Source: Octopus bimaculoides (taxonomy: Eukaryota). Taken from it: DNA of 64,000 nucleotides. Made by a program: the position numbers and the translations under genes. The DNA lies in contig NC_069004.1 in assembly GCF_001194135.2 (NCBI RefSeq), positions 979,610 to 1,043,609 on the forward strand. Direction: 5' to 3'. The notes beneath the pieces are model-generated. The model was given only the letters and a program-made list of their open reading frames with translations, was not told the DNA's origin and ran no database searches. Shown piece after piece: positions 1,768 through 51,335 of this stretch. Positions within the stretch are counted from its first letter, which is position 1; the number at the start of each line of letters is the position of its first letter.

Positions 1768-4700
1768 CTGAAAATAAAATTTAAAAAAATATTGTAAATA
1801 TATTTGGGAAACAGTTACAATCATCAATTGCAACAATTTAAAAAAAAAGGAGAGAGAAGAGCTGCTTTCAAATAGCAATTATTAATCTTATCTGAAATTA
1901 CTGTACAAAGATTACTACAGACAATGAGATTAAGTTTTTTAATATTCTCTTTAGAGAACTTTGGAAGAAAAATTATTCACCATTAGCAAAACCGAATAAT
2001 TTGTTCACAAAGACTGAAGGGAAAGATTTTATGTTAAATTCTCCTGTGAAACATTTTCAATCATTCTTTTACTTGTCATTGGACTGCAACCAAGCTGGAG
2101 CACTGCCTTGAGGGGGTTTAGTCCAATAAATTGCCCCCAGGACTTACTCTCTGCCTGATACATATTCTAGCAGTCACTTTGTGCCAAACCATTTACTGAA
2201 ATGTAAACAAACTGATGCCAGTTGTCAAATGGTGGGTAGGGCAAACACAGTTGCATATGCATACACACAGACACACACAAAGCTTCCAGTTTCTCGCTAC
2301 CAACATTCACTCACAGGGGGTGCTGAACCCCAAGACTATGAGGTTGCAAAGCGAACTTGTTAACCACACAACTATGCCTGTGACAATTGTGGAACAAGAT
2401 CACCTTGTGAGAAACACTCTAGGTGTATTTTAAATAGAGAGAAATTAAAAAAAAAAAAAGATATTAAAACAATGTCTTCTAACCTTGTGGTAAGAATATT
2501 AACAAAACCAGGGCTTTGGTGCAGGTCATTCTGCACTTTGTCCTTGATCCATTTAAAAATTGCTGTGGCACTGGGGTCAGTCTGGATTTGTTTCCAAAGT
2601 TCAGATTGAATACGGAGAAGAGGAAATAGAAAGCTAAGACCCCTGTCTTCTAAAATCTCCATCATTTTCTCTTTACTCTGGTCGTTTTCTTGGTTGAGAG
2701 AGGAAGAAGAAAAAAGAGTATCTGGAGTCAAAAGTACGCAACATCACCATAAGTTTATAATTCTCATTTCACTGAGAACTAAATGAAATAAACTTCTTGA
2801 AACTAGGCTTCTTAATAAACCATTGTCCTCAATAAATGAACTAGAACATATTTGAAATGTAAAGTATTAAATATCAAGCATTATAAGATTCTATTTGAGA
2901 CAGAAAAAGAGAAACAAGCCACTGAGAGGATTGCATACCATACAACTGATTGTATACTAGACACTCAGTAAATTCTAAAGTGCACCCTGCCATTTCAATA
3001 CACAGAATGCCTTATTATAACAAACATAACATGGTGACCTCTCTCGTGGTACAAAAGTGTATAAGTACCATGATAAGTAATAATAATAATATATGGTTCA
3101 GACGGTTGTCTTTTCTGTCTTGAATATCTTAATGTATAAAAGAATTTACACATTAATCATAATGAATTAAGTAAAATAATTTCATGATCATAAAATAGAT
3201 TCATTATATAAAAATCTAAATTACAACTTGAAAATTTCAACCAACAAAAGGAAAAAAAACAAACAAAAAAACCGAAAAAACCCAAACCGTTTGGCCTTAC
3301 CAGGTAACATGTCTTGCAGGTTTATCTTACTTTCATTGAAGACATTCACTAGCCATTCTTTGTCCTTCTGCTTGTGCATTTGTTGTAGAGAAATAAGGAA
3401 GAGTGGATAGTGGGCTCCTTTGTCCAAAACTTCAGCGAGATCCGATAGGCTGATAACATTCCCTCCTATCGCATGCGCTGCATAACTGGCCACATAGGAT
3501 TTAATCAATGGAACGTCAGTCTCCAGTTCTTGAAGTTTCTCAAGCAGGCTGCGGTAAGCCTACAACAGACATCATAAAATACAATCAACATGTGCACAAA
3601 AAAAAAAAAAAAAAAAAATTGATAAAAAGCCATAAGAATAAAGCATTCTTTCACAAAATGACAAATTCTTGACATTTTTACTAAAATGTTAGAAACTTTC
3701 AAACATTTTAGTAAAAATGTCAAGAATTTGTCATTTTGNNNNNNNNNNNNNNNNNNNNNNNNNNNNNNNNNNNNNNNNNNNNNNNNNNNNNTATTAAACA
3801 TTTTATGAAGCGAGAGGTTTTTTGTGGATAAAACTATAAACCATGTAAGTAATAACATCCTTCATTTATGGTGGTAATAATGATTTTATAAATGTAAACA
3901 TTAAACAGCTTGAAAAATATTAATCTTTACTTACTCCCATAAAAGTTTCTGATGTTACAAGGTTTTCTGGTTTCATGCCAACTATAAGATTCATGACTTT
4001 CTCTCTTTCAGTATCTGGAAAATAAAGTGAAAACTTCTTTTAAAACATTAAACAAGGGAAGCACATTCAACCTTTCAATGTCCAGCTTATCGTTGGTTTA
4101 CATTGTTTTCAGCTAATTGTGCATTACCTATCTTATAGCTTCCAAGATTTCAATGATATAATTGTTTATATTTAGAGTGACATTGTAGAGTAGTTGTGAG
4201 AGGTAATCCCTTGCTTTCAACAATTACAATTAATATAGTTATTGTAGCTATCGTTAGAAATACAATTATAAATACTCACCCGATTTGTCCACATTGTTTA
4301 ACATCATTTTGTAAATGCTATCGGAGATAAACCTGAAATTAAATTTATATAAACTTAATATTTTCTTTTTTTTTTTTTATGGTGAAATGTAATAGGAACA
4401 GATTTTAGAACAAACACCAAATTTATTGACAAACAATTACAAACGAACTTAGCTAGAATCAAACAATTATGTACAAGAGTTATAAATAAGCCAGGACTTG
4501 GAATAAATCTTGTGAAGAATTTAAATTACAAACAGGTCACCACCAGCACTCTACCCAGTCTTTTGTCCTCCTTTATACTCTTTACATCAACACAAAAGTT
4601 TAAGTCTGGTTATAAATTGGGTAATATATACCATGTATATCGCTTTTACAGCAAGACACCAATTCCTGACCCTCCACCCCATACTCTAAACCCCTCATCA

Positions 4701-7700: not shown

Positions 7701-10700
7701 TCCCTATACACAATGGGCTTCTTGACAGTCCCTGTCAAGCAGATTCATTGTCAAAGCACTTGTTAGCCCAGGGTTACAACAAAAGAAACTTGCCCAAAGT
7801 GCAATGCAATGGGACTGAGCTTGAAACCACGTGGTTGTTGTAAAATGGACATCTTAACCACACAACCATGCCTACTTTGGTCCTCACTCATCAGTTTCTG
7901 CCTCTCAGCAAAGAAAAAAGAAAAGACCCACATTGAAGTAAGACAATCAAGGCTACAAATATAATAAAACAGCTGGAACGCTGTCATTGGATAATATTAA
8001 TTTTAAATACATGGTATCAAAATGATGCCAAGAAAAATTTGAATAATCTCACATTCGAAAAAGGGAAATCCACTCACCTGGTGTTGGCTGACTACCTCTC
8101 CTGCCCATATTCATAGAATAACCGGACAAAAATCCATCTGCTTGAATTACACCTGGCCCAGTACCAATGTTATCTACAAGAGAAAACATGTCCAAAATGA
8201 GCAATTTTTCTCCACCATTACGATACGGAACACCTGAATCAGAATAAACAAAACTAAAGAGTCAATAGGCTTTTAGTTATGAGAATGACTAATTGGGTCA
8301 GCAGCTCTTAAAAATTTTGGAAAAAGGAGGAAGAGGAGAAAACATTAATTCCATTCTCCTTCTAGATTAATCAATGCTGTCTTTTACCACTATCTGACAT
8401 GTTTACAACCTCAGAAATTAAATGATTTGGTTAAAAATCCACTAAATGTATTATTTATGATCTTAGTTCATTTGAAAATCAGTCAGGGTCACTGTTCTTA
8501 AAAGGCTAAACATTCCAAGAACACAAAGTTAACACCAAAAGCATTTACCTGGTGAAATCACTAATTTTAGTAACACAATTTACATTATTAGATATCTTTG
8601 TTAAACATATTCCAGATTTGTTATACTTACTAAGCAATCCAGTAGGGGCAGCACTGAATATGTCTGCCAATCCCCCTCTGTGGCATGGTCCCATATTTCC
8701 GTTCATCATGCGTGATCCAAACAAACCACCAGTAGGCCCACCAGTACGCCCCGATCCATCTGGAAGACCAAGGTATATTCCAAACTCCTAGGGAAAAAGT
8801 TAGAAAGGGAAATATAAAACTAAAGATACATAACATCAGAACATTTCAATACTTGGGTGGGGTGAAATATTTTATCCCAGAAATAATATTGATTCTGTTG
8901 CCTTTTTTGTTTGTTCCTAACTGCACATTATTTTTCAAAACTTTGGGTTAGGTTACGTCTTCAGAATCATCTATATATGTAGCTAAAGAGAGCTCAAAGT
9001 CCCATGTTTTCTCAAGACAAGTATATAAATAAAGGAGAAGTAACTCCTGCCTTAAGATTCATTCAGTTATTTTTTCATTATAACAAGCAGAATTTGCTCA
9101 ACTTTCTTATTGCTTTTATAATTTCCAAATTAGGTTTACAAGAGACAGATTGTTAAGTCATTAAAATGAGAGTTCAAATTTATTACTAGACACAGCAATT
9201 CTCAATTATATCATTATTTATTTATTTTACTTTTTTAATAANNNNNNNNNNNNNNNNNNNNNNNNNNNNNNNNNNNNNNNNNNNNNNNNNNNNNNNNNNN
9301 NNNNNNNNNNNNNNNNNNNNNNNNNNNNNNNNNNNNNNNNNNNNNNNNNNNNNNNNNNNNNNNNNNNNNNNNNNNNNNNNNNNNNNNNNNNNNNNNNNNN
9401 NNNNNNNNNNNNNNNNNNNNNNNNNNNNNNNNNNNNNNNNNNNNNNNNNNNNNNNNNNNNNNNNNNNNNNNNNNNNNNNNNNNNNNNNNNNNNNNNNNNN
9501 NNNNNNNNNNNNNNNNNNNNNNNNNNNNNNNNNNNNNNNNNNNNNNNNNNNNNNNNNNNNNNNNNNNNNNNNNNNNNNNNNNNNNNNNNNNNNNNNNNNN
9601 NNNNNNNNNNNNNNNNNNNNNNNNNNNNNNNNNNNNNNNNNNNNNNNNNNNNNNNNNNNNNNNNNNNNNNNNNNNNNNNNNNNNNNNNNNNNNNNNNNNN
9701 NNNNNNNNNNNNNNNNNNNNNNNNNNNNNNNNNNNNNNNNNNNNNNNNNNNNNNNNNNNNAAAAAAAAAAAAAAAAAAAAAAGTTAATATATATAAGTAA
9801 AGGCGTTACAGACAGATGATTCTCCATTAGCTACAAATTAACATATTTTTAATTTCCGGTAAAAAAATCTAACATCATTAGGTTCCCTAATTAACTATCT
9901 ACAAATAACAGTTTCAAAACTATTGAAATAGAGAGTGGGTATATTGAAAGAGTTTTCTCACTATCTCATAGTCCTGACCATATTAAGTTAATTATAAATG
10001 TTAGTTCTATTAACCTAGAATGGAGTTAGTTAATATAGCCAAAATTTAGTATCAAGTAAGGACCCAGCACTCAAATTTCTTACGTTGGATTTTCGGTGAC
10101 AACTAGAAGAGATTATATTAGAAGTCAACACAAGATTATTGATAACAATATACAAGGAAGATGATCCATTTTGCAGCAGTATGGTAATCAGAAACAGTAG
10201 AAATATAAAGAAAAAGAACAATAATTACCTTAGCCTCAAGAGAGTCAAGGCGTCGGCCTACAGTACGGATTATCTGGCACAAACACTCCAAGTCCTCAGC
10301 CATATCTTTAACGGGGACGTTTTTCTTCTTTTCCAGAAGCTGCTTGATGCATTTGTGCAAAATGCCCTCGTGCAGCATCTCCAGTTTGCCAAGTTCACCT
10401 GCAATTCATTTATATTAAGATATCATTACTTTTATTCACTTGTTGTTGACATATTTAGTATAAAAGTATTTATTAATATGAAGATGTTTGTTACAGCCAA
10501 TCTAATTATCTCATTTGATCTTGCACTTAATTGACAGTAATTAGAAAAAGTGGGTTACCAAAATAAAATAGAAAAACTTTTTTTGAATTTTTATTAGTTA
10601 ACCTAAAAAGCTTGAGGCCCATGATGATGCAGGGGCTATGAGTTAAGGGTCTTGAGCTCAAAATCATTAGACTGCAGATTGCTTCTCGCACCAGACAATA

Positions 10701-13700: not shown

Positions 13701-15134
13701 ATCCTGAATCTACAGTCACAATTTTATTCCATCAATATTCCACAAATGCCCCTTTTGATGTCATTTATGTTGAAACATATTGTCTTTGTTTCAATTAATG
13801 AAGAATTTATTAAAATAATTGTGTTGTTATTGAGCTAGTGTTTGGAATATAAATTAACATGAAATCTTGGTGCAATATTTTAATTTACATCATTTTAAAA
13901 ACAAAGAATTTGTATCATGGAACTAAAGATGGCTTCAAGCAGGTTAATATGCTGCAACCACATTCTTATAGTTTACAATTCCTATTAGCATTTTGACACA
14001 TCATTTAAGATATAATTAAAATAGAAAAGGTCATTTAATGACATAAATATAAACAATAGACTTAATAATTGTCAATATCTAAGTTAACAATCCAAATATT
14101 TTTAATTTTCCAAAGATTTTAGATAAATTTGTTGCAACGAGCTGCGCTCTGATTTCAAATTCCATTGAGGTCAACTTCACCTTTTAACCTTTTGGGATTG
14201 AAACAAAAGCATTAACCCAGGGCATTGGATTGGCAGAATGGTTTTGGTATCTGTGTCAGCCCTGTGTTGTTCCAACAACTTTTGTGATGACACTGGTGCC
14301 AAATTGTGTGATCTGTCCAAGTTGGTGGCCTTTCCCTTACATTAAATACTGATATTGTGGAGAGTGGAAACTTGTATACATATAGGCAACACTGCTTCAG
14401 TCTCATGTTTGGTTTTGTCACAAGCACGTAATTTTTTATTCTATTTTATACATAGCCTTTCTCCAGTATCTCACTGACTCAAATACTTTCTGGAAGATCA
14501 TTTGCCAGTGACTAAATACAGCTTTAAATTATATACTGTTCCAGAAAAGACCTATCATGATGACAGCAGACTTAAAAAGTATAAATTTTCCTTTTCTTTC
14601 CCTTATGCATTCACAACAAATATATTTTCACACATTGAGTTGAGTTAAAATATAAAGAACCTCTACTCAGAAAAAAAAAACAAAAGTGGGTGACGATTGT
14701 AAATTTTAACTTTCGTTTACATAATGCAAGTCATCAAACATACCCTCTGGCCTTACGGAATATCAGATCATTTTTCTCATCAACTGAAAGACCATCTCGT
14801 TGTTTACTAGGTGGATTCCATCTGAAAAATAGGAAGATTCATTGTTTTTTTAAAAAAGTAAACAAACAAAAAAAAAACAACACTCTTTCATTCAGTCAGA
14901 GAGTTGTGTAGAGAGAATGGTTTCTGTATGGTTCAACAGGAACCAATGAATTGTTACTGCCAATGTTATGACTCCTCTGTCTGAAGACATATTGGTAACC
15001 AAGCAAAAGTCTGAAGACTAAATATCGTAAAGTCTGGATTAAACAAATCCAGAGGAACCAAAAAGGATTTTCATAAAAACTCACCGTCCTCCGGAGCGTC
15101 GGGAAACACCACCCTCTTCTTTATGTCCGTCCAG
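431..15134 (-). CDS. EIF4G2: Eukaryotic translation initiation factor 4 gamma 2 (DAP5/p97/NAT1), spliced CDS with a predicted CUG start
   Basis: Exons (minus): 15134-15085, 14821-14744, 13266-13164, 11857-11747, 11530-11464, 11190-11098, 10398-10229, [N gap 9242-9760], 8787-8631, 8173-8078, 7191-6934, 6630-6380, 5810-5721, 5142-5060, 4332-4280, 4014-3935, 3559-3301, 2688-2484, 1767-1656, 1399-1303, 755-634, 496-431. All phases are compatible. The peptide shows MIF4G (FRKARGILNKLTPEKFDKLSLELLNVG...KMLGNIKFIGELGKL), MA3 (LLDDYFNSGD...YPLFLISLQQ) and W2 (EEAFLKWKED...VNQWLTWLEQAEEESEDDDDD*). It lacks the long eIF4E/PABP-binding N-terminus of eIF4G1/3, as expected for DAP5. Confidence 0.96.
2484..5142 (-). 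CDS. EIF4G2: EIF4G2 MA3-domain exons 5142-5060, 4332-4280, 4014-3935, 3559-3301 and 2688-2484
   Basis: TSLLDDYFNSGD, DVPLIKSYVA, HYPLFLISLQQ, KMMEILEDRGLSFLFPLL, IFKWIKD; canonical splice sites. Confidence 0.95.
5721..8787 (-). CDS. EIF4G2: EIF4G2 Gly/Pro-rich linker exons 8787-8631, 8173-8078, 7191-6934, 6630-6380 and 5810-5721
   Basis: Contains GGLADIF and IGTGPGVIQ, both DAP5-like linker motifs. Phases 0-1-1-1-0-0 are consistent; the 6380 donor is GC. Confidence 0.88.
5930..6230 (+). mobile_element. Representative of the dominant tRNA-derived SINE family; other copies near 855-985(+), 7680-7875(-), 27630-28010(+), 36280-36365(-), 38990-39140(+), 40740-40865(-), 43420-43561(-), 43935-44095(+), 61580-61740(+)
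   Basis: Recurrent ggcatggctgtgtggttaagaag...ggttcagtccca...gggcaagtgtcttct...gaccaaagcc...gaaactgaaagaagcc. Confidence 0.85.
10229..10398 (-). CDS. EIF4G2: EIF4G2 MIF4G exon GELGKLEMLHEGILHKCIKQLL...RLDSLEAK
   Basis: ORF 10136..10378 plus splice sites; EDLECLCQIIRTVGRRLD is the conserved eIF4G motif. Confidence 0.96.
11098..11857 (-). CDS. EIF4G2: EIF4G2 MIF4G exons 11857-11747, 11530-11464 and 11190-11098
   Basis: IFEKALDEPKYSSLYAQLCHRL / TFRRLLLNKCQDEFENR / KQKMLGNIKFIG; canonical splice sites with consistent phases. Confidence 0.96.
13164..13266 (-). CDS. EIF4G2: EIF4G2 MIF4G exon ILNKLTPEKFDKLSLELLNVGIDSQLILKGIILL
   Basis: Signature eIF4G ILNKLTPEKF motif; AG/GTAAG boundaries. Confidence 0.97.
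14744..14821 (-). CDS. EIF4G2: EIF4G2 exon WNPPSKQRDGLSVDEKNDLIFRKARG
   Basis: AG/GT boundaries, phase 2-2; matches the W(V/N)P...FRKxRG start of MIF4G. Confidence 0.93.
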
Positions 15135-15200
15135 TATGCTGCTTGTTGTTGGAAGGAAACACCAACGTGCAGTTGAGATAATTTAAAAAAAAAATTTACC
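15085..15200 (-). CDS. EIF4G2: EIF4G2 first coding exon (5' UTR part 15200-15135, CUG at 15134-15132)
   Basis: Acceptor tctttctttcag at 15201 and donor GTGAGT at 15084. In-frame TAA at 15185-15183. Translation from CTG: (M)DGHKEEGGVSRRSGGR. Confidence 0.85.
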
Positions 15201-18200
15201 CTGAAAGAAAGATATTTGAAAATAGATTTTTAACTAAGAGTTAGATGCTAACAGAAACTGAAAAATCATTTAAATGCACAATATATAAATACAACAAAAC
15301 AAGGTGTGACCTTATCAACCCTTTAGCATTCAGATCACTTGGTCAAATGTAATGTTTATTTATTCACATAGCTTTGAATTAATCATGCATTATCTCATAG
15401 CTTTTTGAGATTTCAGTGATGTGATTGTGTATTTTTAGAATGACATTGTAGAGTAGATATGAAAGGCCAGGCAGGATCTAACCAGTTCAAACATAAAACA
15501 AAATATTTAGACCCGATTTGGCCAGCTTGTAAATCACATTGCAACAATCTTTTACATTCCCTAACTGGTAATTACCAAATTTTTAATTCATCACTTATAA
15601 ACAATAATGAAATTAAAAAAAGTTTCAAGAAACAATACTGGTAGCAAAAGGTTTCTGTGAAACAGTCCTAAATTAGCTGGAAACCAACACTGTGTTTACT
15701 ATTATAACTCTTTTTAAACATTCAAGAATATATCTCCAACTCGTAATAAATAGCAAAGTTAAGAAGTGGTCATTGCCATTATCAATACATTTTTCATTTC
15801 TTTACCTCATCCTAAACAAATGTGAAGGATCTGTAAACTCAAATAACAGCTTATGTTCTTGAGATATTCTTCAGCAACATGTTGAACCACAGCTGTTATT
15901 AAATGAAAATGCAGCCAGATTTGTCTCAAAAGACATACTAAGTGCTTTGTTCAAGAATAAAGTTCATTCATATTGCATGCATGCTAAGAGGAAATTTTGA
16001 AAGCCATGGTGCAAACATTTTGTCACGGCTCAACTTATTAGAAAGACTTAATTAAACCAAAACATTAGCTATAACACTAAAATGCCGATTTACATGTCAG
16101 TGGACTGGGTCCATACAAAGCAGATATCGAAACAAGAAATCCTTCTTAAGTTGATGTTTTAGCAAATCACAAAACTGGCTAAGCATACATAAAATCTGAA
16201 TTCAAATTCACAAGACCAGCACTCAACATTAATTTCATTATTCCTATTATTAGATTCATTTAATAAATTCAATTAAAAATCATTAAACTGAATGTTGTAC
16301 ATTACCTGATCTAACTACTCCAAATATCGATAGAATTTTATCTAAAATGTCTTTTGTATAAATTTTCTAGTTTAAACTTTTGGAACTTACCTCTAGAATT
16401 GAAAGCTATTACATTCATGGTTTATCTTGGAATTTTTAATAAATACAGATTCCTTTTGATTAGAGAGAAAACTCTTGGAGAAAGTCATGTAGTGGCTTAT
16501 ACAACTTAAACCACTGGATATTTTAACAGTATTGAAAGGATAAGAGCAGGACTTACCCAATGCTTCTATAGCTTTGGTCATGTTAGCTACATAACACATT
16601 ATAGACATTAGGTCTGGACAATCAAAACTCCAGAAACAATCCCTTACCCTTCCCCTCTTGTTGCTAATACAACAGAACTTGTTACAATAAGACAGTGTAT
16701 AATGTATAGTCATGTTTCTACTTGCAAATGAAAGAATGGAATTATTCTATGACTACTCTATTATTTTTGTATATATTATTCTTGTTGTTTGATATCTATC
16801 GACCATTAATGCTGGTAGATTTCCTTTATTCCTTCAAGTTGGAGCAGAGGGTGAGAATATGATCATTACAGAATTAGAAATACTAATTATCTCTTTCATA
16901 AATTAATTAGGGGAATCGTTTTCATAGCATCTCTTAAATACACTTTGGTAAAAGAGCATTATGAAAAGCAACTAACAAAACTTCCTGGATATATAAAGAT
17001 TAGCAATATGACACCCAAGGTGTGTGTGTGGGGGTTTATATATAAGTGAGAGAGATCATGGGCTGAACCAACCCTATTTTATATATAAAAGTGTACTTCC
17101 TGAGGCTTCTTTAGGAAGAAGAAAGCCATTCTAATTTTAAAGTATGAAATAAATGAGAAGTAAATCTTCCCTCTGAGTGGATACCAGTCTATTTTTAGGC
17201 AATATTCCCAGAAGAGGTGTTTCTCAAAGTGTGTAGAATTAAGTGAACTTCTCAAACACACCTTAAAATACCTGCAGTGGATTTCAATGAACACATACAG
17301 GAAAAAATTATTTCAGGAGTTCTTCTTTGAGCAACAAGTCCAGCACTATACTAGTAAAACAGGTATAGATTATTTTCATCCAAGACAAAAGTATAATTGA
17401 GAGTTTCTATTCCCAAAACCAAAAAAAAAACTGAGGATCAAAATGGTTACAAGTAATCCTCAGTAATACTCATAATCTACTATAATCCACAGCTTATCTT
17501 GTTAGTGTTGTTGAGGTGGGCATAATTTCTCTAGTAAAATACACTCTGTACATCCATGTAAAGTAGTTGGTGATAGGAAAGGCATCCAGTCACAGAAAAC
17601 ATTCTAAAAATGGAACGAGGGAGAGAAGTGTCTGACACTATTGGTGGAGGTAACTTCAAATGAAAACCTAATTCCATGATAACTTGTAGAATCAAAATCA
17701 ACACGGAACAGAGAGGCTTATTTGCTCAGTGGTAAATTGAATGCAGATTGGGAGTGGCTTGGTTTGAACCCAGATTGGGGGTGCCTTGGTGCCATTCCTA
17801 CCATATGTCACCAGTATTTTCTTCAAACTAGAGAAAGCAGAGTTAGATGCCCTTGCTCAATAACACTGGCTAAATCTGAATTTATGGCAATATAATAGCC
17901 CAGCACCTTAAATTGTACTCCAGGGAAGTGAATAGACAACTGTAGGGACCAAGAGTGAAACTTGGGTTACAAGCCCATATGGGTTCTTAGCATCAGGTAA
18001 TCACACCTTAACTGCAAGTGGAAAATAAAAGACCAAGTAAAAGTTCCTAACATCAATGGCATCCATTATTAATCTTGTCTAACTGGTTCCACTGGAGCTA
18101 CAGACATACAATAATCATGATATATAAGAAGTAGTTTATTAATAAATCAGTTGACACAGTCACTGTAAGAGTACACTAGAAATAAAGACAAGAGAAGCCA

Positions 18201-27046: not shown

Positions 27047-28336
27047 TTGGGGAAGGCGGTGGAGTGCGGTAGGCGTACAACAAGGCGACTCCTACTCTCT
27101 TTCACGTTTAACGTCTCCAAATTTAGCATTTGAAATTTAATTAACTCACTCATAAATCTCATAAATGAAATACAGGTTTTTCCCGGACAATTAATATGGC
27201 TTAAAAATATACAGATCCTAAAATTTACTTCAGTTCGGTAATATTGGACAGAAAAAATTTAGAGGAGTAAAAAATTAATTACATTAAATGATACATATTT
27301 CAAATTTAATTTGAATAATAATAACAACAACAACAACAATAATAATAATAATAATAATAATAATGATGATGATGATGATGATACTTCCTTTTCTTTGATA
27401 AAAATAATTGTTACTAATATAGGCACAAGGCCAGTAATTTTGAGAGGAGGGGGGGTTTGTCAGTTATATCAGTCACAATATTTGACTGGTACTTTGTTTT
27501 GTTGAACCCAGAAGGATGTAAAGCAAAGCTAACTTTGGCAAGATTTGAACTGAGAGAGTACCCAAACAAATACTTGCAAAGTTTTTTTTTTTTTTCCAGT
27601 GTTCTAATGATTCTACCAAATAACATTTGACACTGGCATGGTTATGTGGTTAAAAAGCTTCCTTTGCAACCACTTGGTCTCACGTTCAGTCCCACTGTGC
27701 AGCACCCAGAGCAAATGTTTTCAACTGTAACCTTGGACCAACCAATGCCTTGTGAATGAATATTGTAGATTGGAAACTGTGTGGAAGCCCATCATATATA
27801 CAAATGTGTGTGTGTATCATTGTATTTGTCCAACACCTCTCCCATCCCCACTTGACAGCCAGTGTTAGTTTGTTTACATCTCTGTAACTTAGAGGTAAAA
27901 GCAACCAATAGAATAAGAACCAAACTTAAAAATAAATACTGGGGTCATTTTATTGAATGAAACCCTTCAAAGTGGTGTCCCAGCAGGGTTGCATTCTAAT
28001 GGCTGAAATACACCACACACTTAAATATATATGTCTGTATCTATGACCCTGCGTCTATCTTTTATCTTTTACTAAAAAGATAGACACGGGGTCATAGATA
28101 CAGACATACAAATAAGTGTGTCATGTGTTTATAACATTTAACTATCTAAACAAAAAAATATATTCGAAACAATGGCCATCTTGAACACTGACATGTTTCC
28201 AGAATTCAGAGCCTCACAAACGAGATGACAAGGAACCAACTTCTGGTAATTCATTGTGCTTGAGAAGATATATGAAGCTAAATGAAATCATAGCCAGGCA
28301 TAATGTCATGTCCTTTACAGTCATGCCTCCCACCTG

Positions 28337-38729: not shown

Positions 38730-51335
<12,606 letters not shown>

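Follow-up and report, generated by a model that had tools for sequence, protein, structure and literature searches.

How does translation of eIF4G2 (DAP5/NAT1/p97) begin in an octopus, when the stretch of mRNA that leads into its reading frame offers no AUG? The question is raised by a stretch of 64,000 nucleotides (nt) of Octopus bimaculoides DNA (assembly GCF_001194135.2, contig NC_069004.1, forward-strand positions 979,610 to 1,043,609), called the window below, with positions counted from its first letter. The gene lies on the minus strand of this window, and an earlier note, made from the letters alone, had proposed that it is initiated at a CUG codon. Following the analyses described here, we consider it probable that octopus eIF4G2 has no usable AUG and starts at a conserved CUG at positions 15134-15132, and the comparisons of acceptor, codon, upstream stop and reading register all speak for the proposal of the note. 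eIF4G2 is the textbook cellular mRNA with a non-AUG as its only start codon, and a testable CUG in molluscs makes concrete the question of why this gene was never allowed an AUG.

The gene was located by tblastn, using as queries a mollusc transcript and human eIF4G2, the latter serving as a probe only. Collinear eIF4G2 exons were found from 15134 down to about 434, and all features of the gene given below are on the minus strand. The best matches of the full-length query were the eIF4G2 proteins of Octopus, Argonauta and Sepia, with domains PF02854, PF02847 and PF02020, and the top match was XP_014783479.1 from O. bimaculoides. The order of the domains (MIF4G, MA3, W2) and the high similarity to known eIF4G2 proteins identify the gene as the eIF4G2 orthologue. 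The N-terminal region that binds eIF4E and PABP is absent from the octopus protein, as only about 43 residues precede the ILNKLTPEKF of the MIF4G domain and the frame is shut upstream of them by a TAA at 15185-15183. The locus of the newer version of this model, XP_052832445.1 (L007; GCA_001194135.2, CM046624.1), is the window itself, with 100% identity including the N gaps.

The exon carrying the proposed start is 116 nt long (15200-15085) and comprises the last part of the 5' leader followed by the first 17 eIF4G2 codons. Reading the sequence directly, it follows a splice acceptor AG at 15202-15201 (tttctttcag/GGTAAA, the slash marking the exon boundary) and ends at the donor CG/gtgagt, with the GT at 15084-15083. 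In the eIF4G2 frame the exon opens with GGT AAA and a run of ten U (15194-15185), and the last of these begins the in-frame TAA, 17 codons 5' of the CUG; because this stop consists of the run's final T plus AA, an error in the length of the run could not remove it. Directly behind the stop are an in-frame AUU (15182-15180) and AUC (15179-15177), both weak near-cognate alternative starts. From the U run to the CUG extends an AUG-free leader of 47 nt (15181-15135) that is nearly invariant in cephalopods and ends in an in-frame ATA (15137-15135), and no ATG in any frame was found between 15200 and the CTG. The CUG itself stands in the context AGC AUA CUG G, with A at -3 and G at +4, and is followed by codons 2-17 (DGHKEEGGVSRRSGGR..., 15131-15085), which begin with GAC GGA CAT and among which GGT GGT GTT TCC is conserved including the third positions. 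The exon start, the stop that no upstream AUG can read through, the two near-cognate codons behind it and the context of the CTG had all been read by the earlier note as we find them. So had the register: (M)DGHKEEGGVSR aligns without a gap to the vertebrate N-terminus MESAIAEGGASR (P0004, P0184), which is started at GUG, and in octopus as in vertebrates the start is followed by six residues and then by GG[AV]SR.

Downstream, the reading frame continues through a second coding exon (14821-14744), which encodes (R)WNPPSKQRDGLSVDEKNDLIFRKARG, and further exons at 13266-13164, 11857-11747, 11530-11464 and 11190-11098. In the frame of the joined exons the first in-frame AUG is codon 160 (11122-11120), inside the MIF4G domain, which is where the note had placed it. 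Initiation at this AUG would give a factor without the first half of MIF4G and has in its favour that no other in-frame AUG is on offer. We regard it as extremely improbable, given that the 159 codons upstream are open and, as protein, highly conserved from octopus to human, including the eIF4A-binding N-terminal half of MIF4G. Several out-of-frame AUGs also precede codon 160, and the first in-frame Met of vertebrate eIF4G2 is this same Met, and vertebrates are known to start at GUG.

The proposal depends on the exon boundary at 15200, and here comparison with other cephalopods is informative. Similarity between octopus and Argonauta starts exactly at the cag/GGTAAA acceptor and ends at the donor, with 97% identity over 15209-15079, and no other conservation was found between the two in the 10 kb upstream of the CUG exon. 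In the Argonauta hians genome (two haplotigs) the exon reads cag/GGTAAA-T10-AAATAATCTCAACTGCACG...GGAGGACG/gtcagt, so that both exon ends match those of octopus, and the TAA is conserved as well; the coding sequence deposited for Argonauta is 5'-partial and begins with the codon right after this stop. For cuttlefish, a transcript from the Logan collection (L003) maps at 95-100% identity to a locus in the Sepia pharaonis genome (L006), and it joins a 5' untranslated exon of at least 508 nt (L006 10269-10793, donor TG/gtaagt) to ...tttcag/AATAAA-T17-AATTATCTCAACTGCACG... (L006 19839-19960). In Sepia too the exon has the boundaries found in octopus; its acceptor cag/AATAAA is the positional homologue of 15200 and is the one used in the transcript. 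The note had named as one refuting case a splice to an AAG/CAG acceptor further downstream in the exon, and this acceptor is not used in the cuttlefish transcript. In cuttlefish the exon is thus seen as such in the mature mRNA, from transcript against genome, and its presence in the octopus mRNA is suggested by the boundary shared with Argonauta.

No homologue of the first Sepia exon was detectable in the window: a homology search for the 5'-most octopus exon with that Sepia exon gave low-complexity matches only, both in the window and in the upstream sequence of Argonauta. No octopus open reading frame derived from a transcript and reaching into the leader was found in the protein database, and exact-pattern scans of JGI metagenome contigs for the leader and the start region gave no match. 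The length of the U run is 10 T in octopus and in Argonauta and, in Sepia, 17 T in the genome (L006 19845-19861) and in the transcript-derived open reading frame P0245, versus 16 T in L003 (525-540). Whether Sepia has 16 or 17 T toggles whether the leader upstream is open in the eIF4G2 frame, so selection evidently does not act on the frame 5' of the run. As the length of the run is not kept to multiples of three, we argue that the sequence 5' of it is not read in this frame.

The public gene models tell a different story, and they bring in the possibility of a start at an AUG further upstream, whose exon would be joined in frame to the leader. One such form is shared by XP_014783479.1 and XP_052832445.1, from two O. 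bimaculoides RefSeq releases, which begin MTKAIEALV/ISTARW… from an AUG at 16581, and XP_036368997.1 from O. sinensis has the corresponding MTKAVEALV/ITTARW.... The AUG piece of the two O. bimaculoides models (16581-16557, ATG ACC AAA GCT ATA GAA GCA TTG G/gtaagt) has a good donor. However, for the in-frame join …EALV/ISTARW the next exon would have to open at 15181, where an AA (15183-15182) precedes it instead of an AG, and the join skips the conserved AG 19 nt upstream; no canonical splice yielding this join was found within the window. Spliced to the canonical acceptor at 15200, the AUG piece gives only a nine-codon upstream open reading frame, MTKAIEALG followed by a stop. A search of the 10 kb upstream in Argonauta did not find the AUG exon, the cuttlefish transcript lacks it, and the 300 nt 5' of its donor are not depleted in AUG (6 observed versus 5.9 expected).

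A second form of the same idea comes from the O. vulgaris model CAI9739996.1, MVVKKSAEF/ILDGH…, which would use an internal CAG acceptor at 15141-15139, and an AG after a pyrimidine stretch does exist there. Against it, conservation is equal on both sides of the internal CAG and the cuttlefish transcript has no splice at this place. The N-terminal peptide of the model, moreover, matches the window at about 39899: its exon with VVKKSA corresponds to the translation of a minus-strand stretch at about 39740-39930 (…ggctacgtggttaagaagtcagcttcacaaccatatggtc…), which resembles an abundant cephalopod short interspersed element. Taking both forms together, we judge an upstream AUG start to be quite unlikely. 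The remaining models do not agree with these or with each other. The UniProt models (MNYQK/WNPP...) begin at an ATG at 28254, whose donor GTTGGT is weak, and leave out the CUG exon, and the Sepia pharaonis model (MHSFFKIF...FFFFFLIISTARW) runs on upstream of the CUG exon to an ATG at L006 10001, 5' of the untranslated exon supported by the transcript.

Together with the 5'-partial Argonauta entry, the five public models of cephalopod eIF4G2 thus have five mutually incompatible N-termini, which for one conserved gene is the pattern expected of pipelines forced to find an AUG, and these N-termini are probably wrong. The earlier note had expected automated annotation to truncate about 159 residues, and this did not prove to be so; instead, AUG exons were invented (RefSeq, UniProt, O. 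vulgaris), an intron was read (Sepia) or the coding sequence was left 5'-partial (Argonauta). With at least five inconsistent N-termini in RefSeq, UniProt and INSDC, some of them from a non-AG acceptor, a retained intron or a repeat-derived exon, the cephalopod eIF4G2 models merit correction to a non-AUG start.

The note had asked for an alignment of the CTG and the upstream stop across cephalopods and other molluscs. We surveyed the aligned codon in 11 sequences, taken from fetched transcripts and genomes; the Logan and JGI transcripts were placed taxonomically by similarity to named species only. The codon is CTG in eight of eight lophotrochozoan-type sequences, namely Octopus, Argonauta, Sepia and five transcripts (L001, L008, L009, L010 and L011) that by protein similarity are of bivalve, gastropod and other lophotrochozoan type; the context of this group is A(A/G)C AU(A/U) CUG GAC. 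In all three chelicerate-type transcripts, L002 (222), L012 (260) and L013 (179), it is ACG, in ACA/AAG ACG GAC G, and L012 matches a protein of the scorpion Centruroides. A at -3, G at +4 and an upstream in-frame stop are found in 11/11, and in ten of them no in-frame AUG lies between the stop and the aligned codon, Sepia being clear of one both in the transcript and in the mRNA derived from the genome.

An ordinary Leu or Thr codon would be expected to drift at its third position. CTG makes up only 18-38% of the Leu codons of the same coding sequences, and the product over six lineages puts the chance of an invariant CTG at about 2e-4, a figure that assumes independence of the lineages, an assumption that holds only approximately. 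Of the 43 Thr codons of L012, 0 are ACG. The invariance of the CTG is therefore more than chance. The residue that the codon would specify differs by clade (L, T or V), yet in every case a single step separates the codon from AUG, just as one would expect for a start codon.

Two observations from the survey concern upstream codons. The sequence lacking from the ten above is L011 (290-322; JGI metatranscriptome 3300018911), which has an in-frame AUG in a weak context (UGC AUG G) ten codons 5' of the conserved CUG and no stop between them, and it may be an exception to the published view that eIF4G2 mRNAs have no usable AUG. In the bivalve-type L001, L008 and L009, a second in-frame CUG (CUG UUR) lies 6-8 codons (about 20-25 nt) 5' of the main CUG, with indels of multiples of 3 nt between, and in that class translation could alternatively start at this second codon.

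Conservation at the nucleotide level gives a further line of evidence. In the well-aligned coding exons, octopus and Sepia agree at 94% of first, 98% of second and 71% of third codon positions, and the CUG exon is the best conserved piece of the gene, at 97% versus 72-94% for other exons. There is one mismatch in the 47-nt leader and one in the first 50 coding nt, such that about 100 nt around the CUG (window 15181-15085 versus L003 543-639) hold two differences (98% identical), whereas third codon positions elsewhere differ at 29%. This near-identity indicates a constraint exceeding that of protein coding. The motif GGT GGT G(C/T)T TC hardly varies among nine species, third positions included, and the environment of the vertebrate GUG has likewise been described as "particularly conserved" (PMC9945437). 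The leaders of the fetched transcripts are also depleted in AUG (13 observed versus 36.8 expected), and the 589-nt Sepia leader has one AUG versus 10.7 expected. Such leaders fit an mRNA that needs to bring scanning ribosomes to a weak codon.

The search for RNA structure in the region gave no convincing result. No stable fold was found for the 116-nt exon, which folds worse than shuffled sequence (z = +1.68), RNAalifold on nine species returned only a weak helix of 5 bp with no compensatory change or covariation, and the structures predicted for -10 to +80 vary from one species to another. An Rfam scan of the whole window gave no match. A helix defined by hand, +21..+27 with +60..+66, is paired in 87% of cells versus 52-67% in slid controls (nine species); one pair is changed on both sides, most columns are nearly invariant, and the chelicerate rows fit poorly. 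This helix (GGGUGGU/ACCACCC, window 15114-15108) would begin 17 nt after the start codon. The octopus lacks the exon holding the usual 3' arm, and a CCACCU in its second exon (14814-14809) lies at almost the same distance. We treat the helix as a lead only.

Two side observations belong to the same region. An exact direct repeat of 10 nt, UGGUGUUUCC on the mRNA strand, occurs at 15164-15155 and 15111-15102, 53 nt apart and thus flanking the CUG on both sides; Argonauta and Sepia have it too, and by our estimate about 0.006 such repeats would be expected by chance in 116 nt. The cuttlefish has an extra in-frame exon of 138 nt (DERPPQLS…RWIPPSTLKRD…LRTVRG; L003 640-777, L006 31444-31583) before the WNPPS exon, of which it looks like a partial duplicate. 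Other molluscs have one copy, and the first copy is absent from octopus (compare the intron at 15084-14822) and from Argonauta, so that their N-terminus is 46 residues shorter.

Putting these results together, the following route is proposed. The mature octopus mRNA would enter its coding part through the acceptor at 15200, and a 43S complex would reach the start by cap-dependent scanning through the AUG-free, poorly structured, U-rich leader. The near-cognate CUG at 15134-15132 would then be recognised by the initiator methionyl-tRNA, aided by A at -3 and G at +4 and by the extended conserved flanks, and the predicted product would begin M-D-G-H-K-E-E-G-G-V-S-R. In human cells, and in the NAT1 context, a GUG start works at about 30% of AUG efficiency and a CUG nearly at the AUG level (PMC5714202).

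The first AUG 3' of the CUG, at 14821-14819, is out of frame, has A at -3 and G at +4 once spliced, and opens a frame that reads MEST before its stop. Ribosomes leaking past the CUG would meet this four-codon frame and not the AUG of codon 160, and because they would be intercepted there the truncated factor should not be the default product. This AUG arises from a conserved Arg-Trp (CGA UGG) at the junction of exons 1 and 2, and an equivalent out-of-frame AUG is seen in Sepia and in L001.

In human cells eIF5 raises and 5MP lowers non-AUG initiation of NAT1 (PMC5714202). By analogy with the vertebrate GUG, octopus eIF4G2 output would respond to the factors that set how stringently start codons are chosen (eIF1, eIF5 and 5MP), and regulation by the same eIF5/5MP logic may hold in octopus. 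The sequence features, the exon boundaries by conservation across species, the use of the homologous acceptor in cuttlefish and the conservation of codon and context are observed here, and from them and by analogy we infer the decoding of the CUG, the insertion of Met at it and these regulatory consequences.

Several points weigh against the CUG as the sole start. As described, the RefSeq models of O. bimaculoides (in two releases) and of O. sinensis (in one) begin with an upstream AUG exon and translate across the leader. Two of the three substitutions in cephalopod leaders would be synonymous in the eIF4G2 frame (ATT to ATA in Argonauta, ACA to ACC in Sepia), and the indels 5' of the CUG are multiples of three in three bivalve-type transcripts; together these leave room for some initiation further upstream. 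Peptides that would tell the starts apart are (Ac-)MDGHK and MDGHKEEGGVSR, versus WCFLPTTSSILDGHK for an upstream start, MTKAIEALVISTAR and MVVKKSAEFILDGHK.

Such upstream initiation could use the in-frame near-cognate codons 5' of the CUG (AUU 15182, AUC 15179 or AUA 15137), adding up to 16 residues (IISTARWCFLPTTSSI) and either replacing the CUG or giving a minor second isoform. These codons lie in frame after the stop, the two leader substitutions just given are synonymous in this frame, and the bivalve-type transcripts with their 3-nt indels have the conserved second CUG mentioned above. On the other side, AUU, AUC and AUA rank with the weakest near-cognates, and position +4 of the AUA is C. 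The leader is conserved beyond what coding would require, with its single mismatch in 47 nt against about 5.5 expected if it were coding, and that of O. sinensis has a non-synonymous change (ITTARW versus ISTARW). In molluscs, residues -2 and -3 vary (Ser, Asn, Ile) while the nucleotides A-6, A-3 and U-2 are fixed, sequence upstream is unalignable between classes with conservation beginning at the CUG, and in Sepia the upstream frame hinges on the length of the T run. We consider a start at these codons unlikely. Conservation of the upstream pseudo-peptide (…SSI / …SNI) was also considered as proof of its translation and was rejected, as the same effect is seen upstream of the proven vertebrate GUG (…CQAAK/VES… in read-through models).

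Returning to initiation at the CUG, its position suggests a broader idea, which we put forward tentatively and to which we give somewhat less than an even chance. The eIF4G2 start may have stayed near-cognate, never AUG, at one alignable position since before the split of protostomes and deuterostomes, as CUG in molluscs and their relatives, ACG in chelicerate-type arthropods and GUG in deuterostomes. The cephalopod block (-47 to +50), in which synonymous sites too are conserved, may then be a cis element beyond the Kozak context, possibly including the helix of GGGUGGU (+21..+27) with (A)CCACC(C/U), that aids efficient non-AUG initiation. If true, this reading answers the published remark that invertebrate start sites cannot be assigned.

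Elsewhere in the window and in the gene, a few features deserve mention. Assembly N gaps lie within eIF4G2 at 9242-9760 and 3739-3791, and the first of them hides the exon or exons for WMDKYF…RIRFMLQD that are present in O. sinensis and O. vulgaris; XP_052832445.1 instead enters an intron at about 10228 (…SLEAKVIIVLFLYISTV). Exons of a C2H2 zinc-finger gene are found at 47860-49000 on the plus strand. A PDB sequence search with this gene gave generic zinc-finger matches only, and the gene looks like ZNF143/Staf.

Non-AUG initiation of eIF4G2 as such is well known. The GUG start of vertebrate EIF4G2 is experimentally established (Tang et al. 2017, PMC5714202; PMC9945437), in agreement with what the earlier note had stated, and the finding goes back to Takahashi et al. 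2005 (Genomics 85:360), a paper that both PMC9945437 and PMC9977666 cite for it; according to the account in PMC9977666, it has been known since then in vertebrates, Halocynthia and Drosophila. The note had also taken a CUG start of Drosophila NAT1 as established, which goes too far: in Drosophila a non-AUG codon is used, and its position "has not been precisely determined" (PMC9945437). By 2019 no organism with an AUG-started eIF4G2 was known, and for Mollusca the site was said to be one that "cannot be assigned unambiguously" (PMC6573783). The claim of the note to extend non-AUG initiation to a cephalopod therefore holds for the specific codon, which is new, and not for the lack of an AUG in molluscs, which had already been stated (PMC6573783). 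What is new here is the specific codon for cephalopods and, apparently, for molluscs generally, the clade-wise pattern of CUG, ACG and GUG, and the annotation errors; the conserved non-AUG initiation of eIF4G2 and the missing mollusc AUG were already known.

The closest known system is vertebrate EIF4G2, an orthologous gene with the same aligned start position six residues before GG[AV]SR, A at -3 and G at +4, the same MIF4G Met as first in-frame AUG, unusually conserved flanks of the start and few or short upstream open reading frames. It differs from the octopus gene in that the octopus codon is CUG and not GUG, in that A(A/G)C AUH stands upstream in place of the vertebrate rGCCGCC, and in having a C-rich tract where the octopus has a U run. 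The vertebrate GUG has been shown by experiment, whereas the mollusc CUG is proposed here from sequence. Drosophila dNAT1 and Halocynthia roretzi NAT1 (Takahashi et al. 2005, by way of PMC9977666) are, like the octopus gene, invertebrate orthologues without a usable AUG; unlike for them, a single codon can be proposed by alignment in cephalopods and other molluscs. The statement of Smirnova et al. concerns the same phenomenon in the same phylum and puts the absence of a mollusc AUG on record, and beyond it we assign a specific CUG, which does not vary among the cephalopod, bivalve-type and gastropod-type sequences and can be aligned with the GUG and ACG of other clades. Finally, the octopus mRNA resembles the exclusive-CUG mammalian mRNAs GTF3A, R3HCC1 and BAG1 (PMC5714202) in its proposed sole start, a near-cognate CUG in an (A/G)xxCUGG context. 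Those are unrelated genes, and the CUG of GTF3A is a mammalian novelty replacing an AUG, whereas the non-AUG state of eIF4G2 appears to be ancestral.

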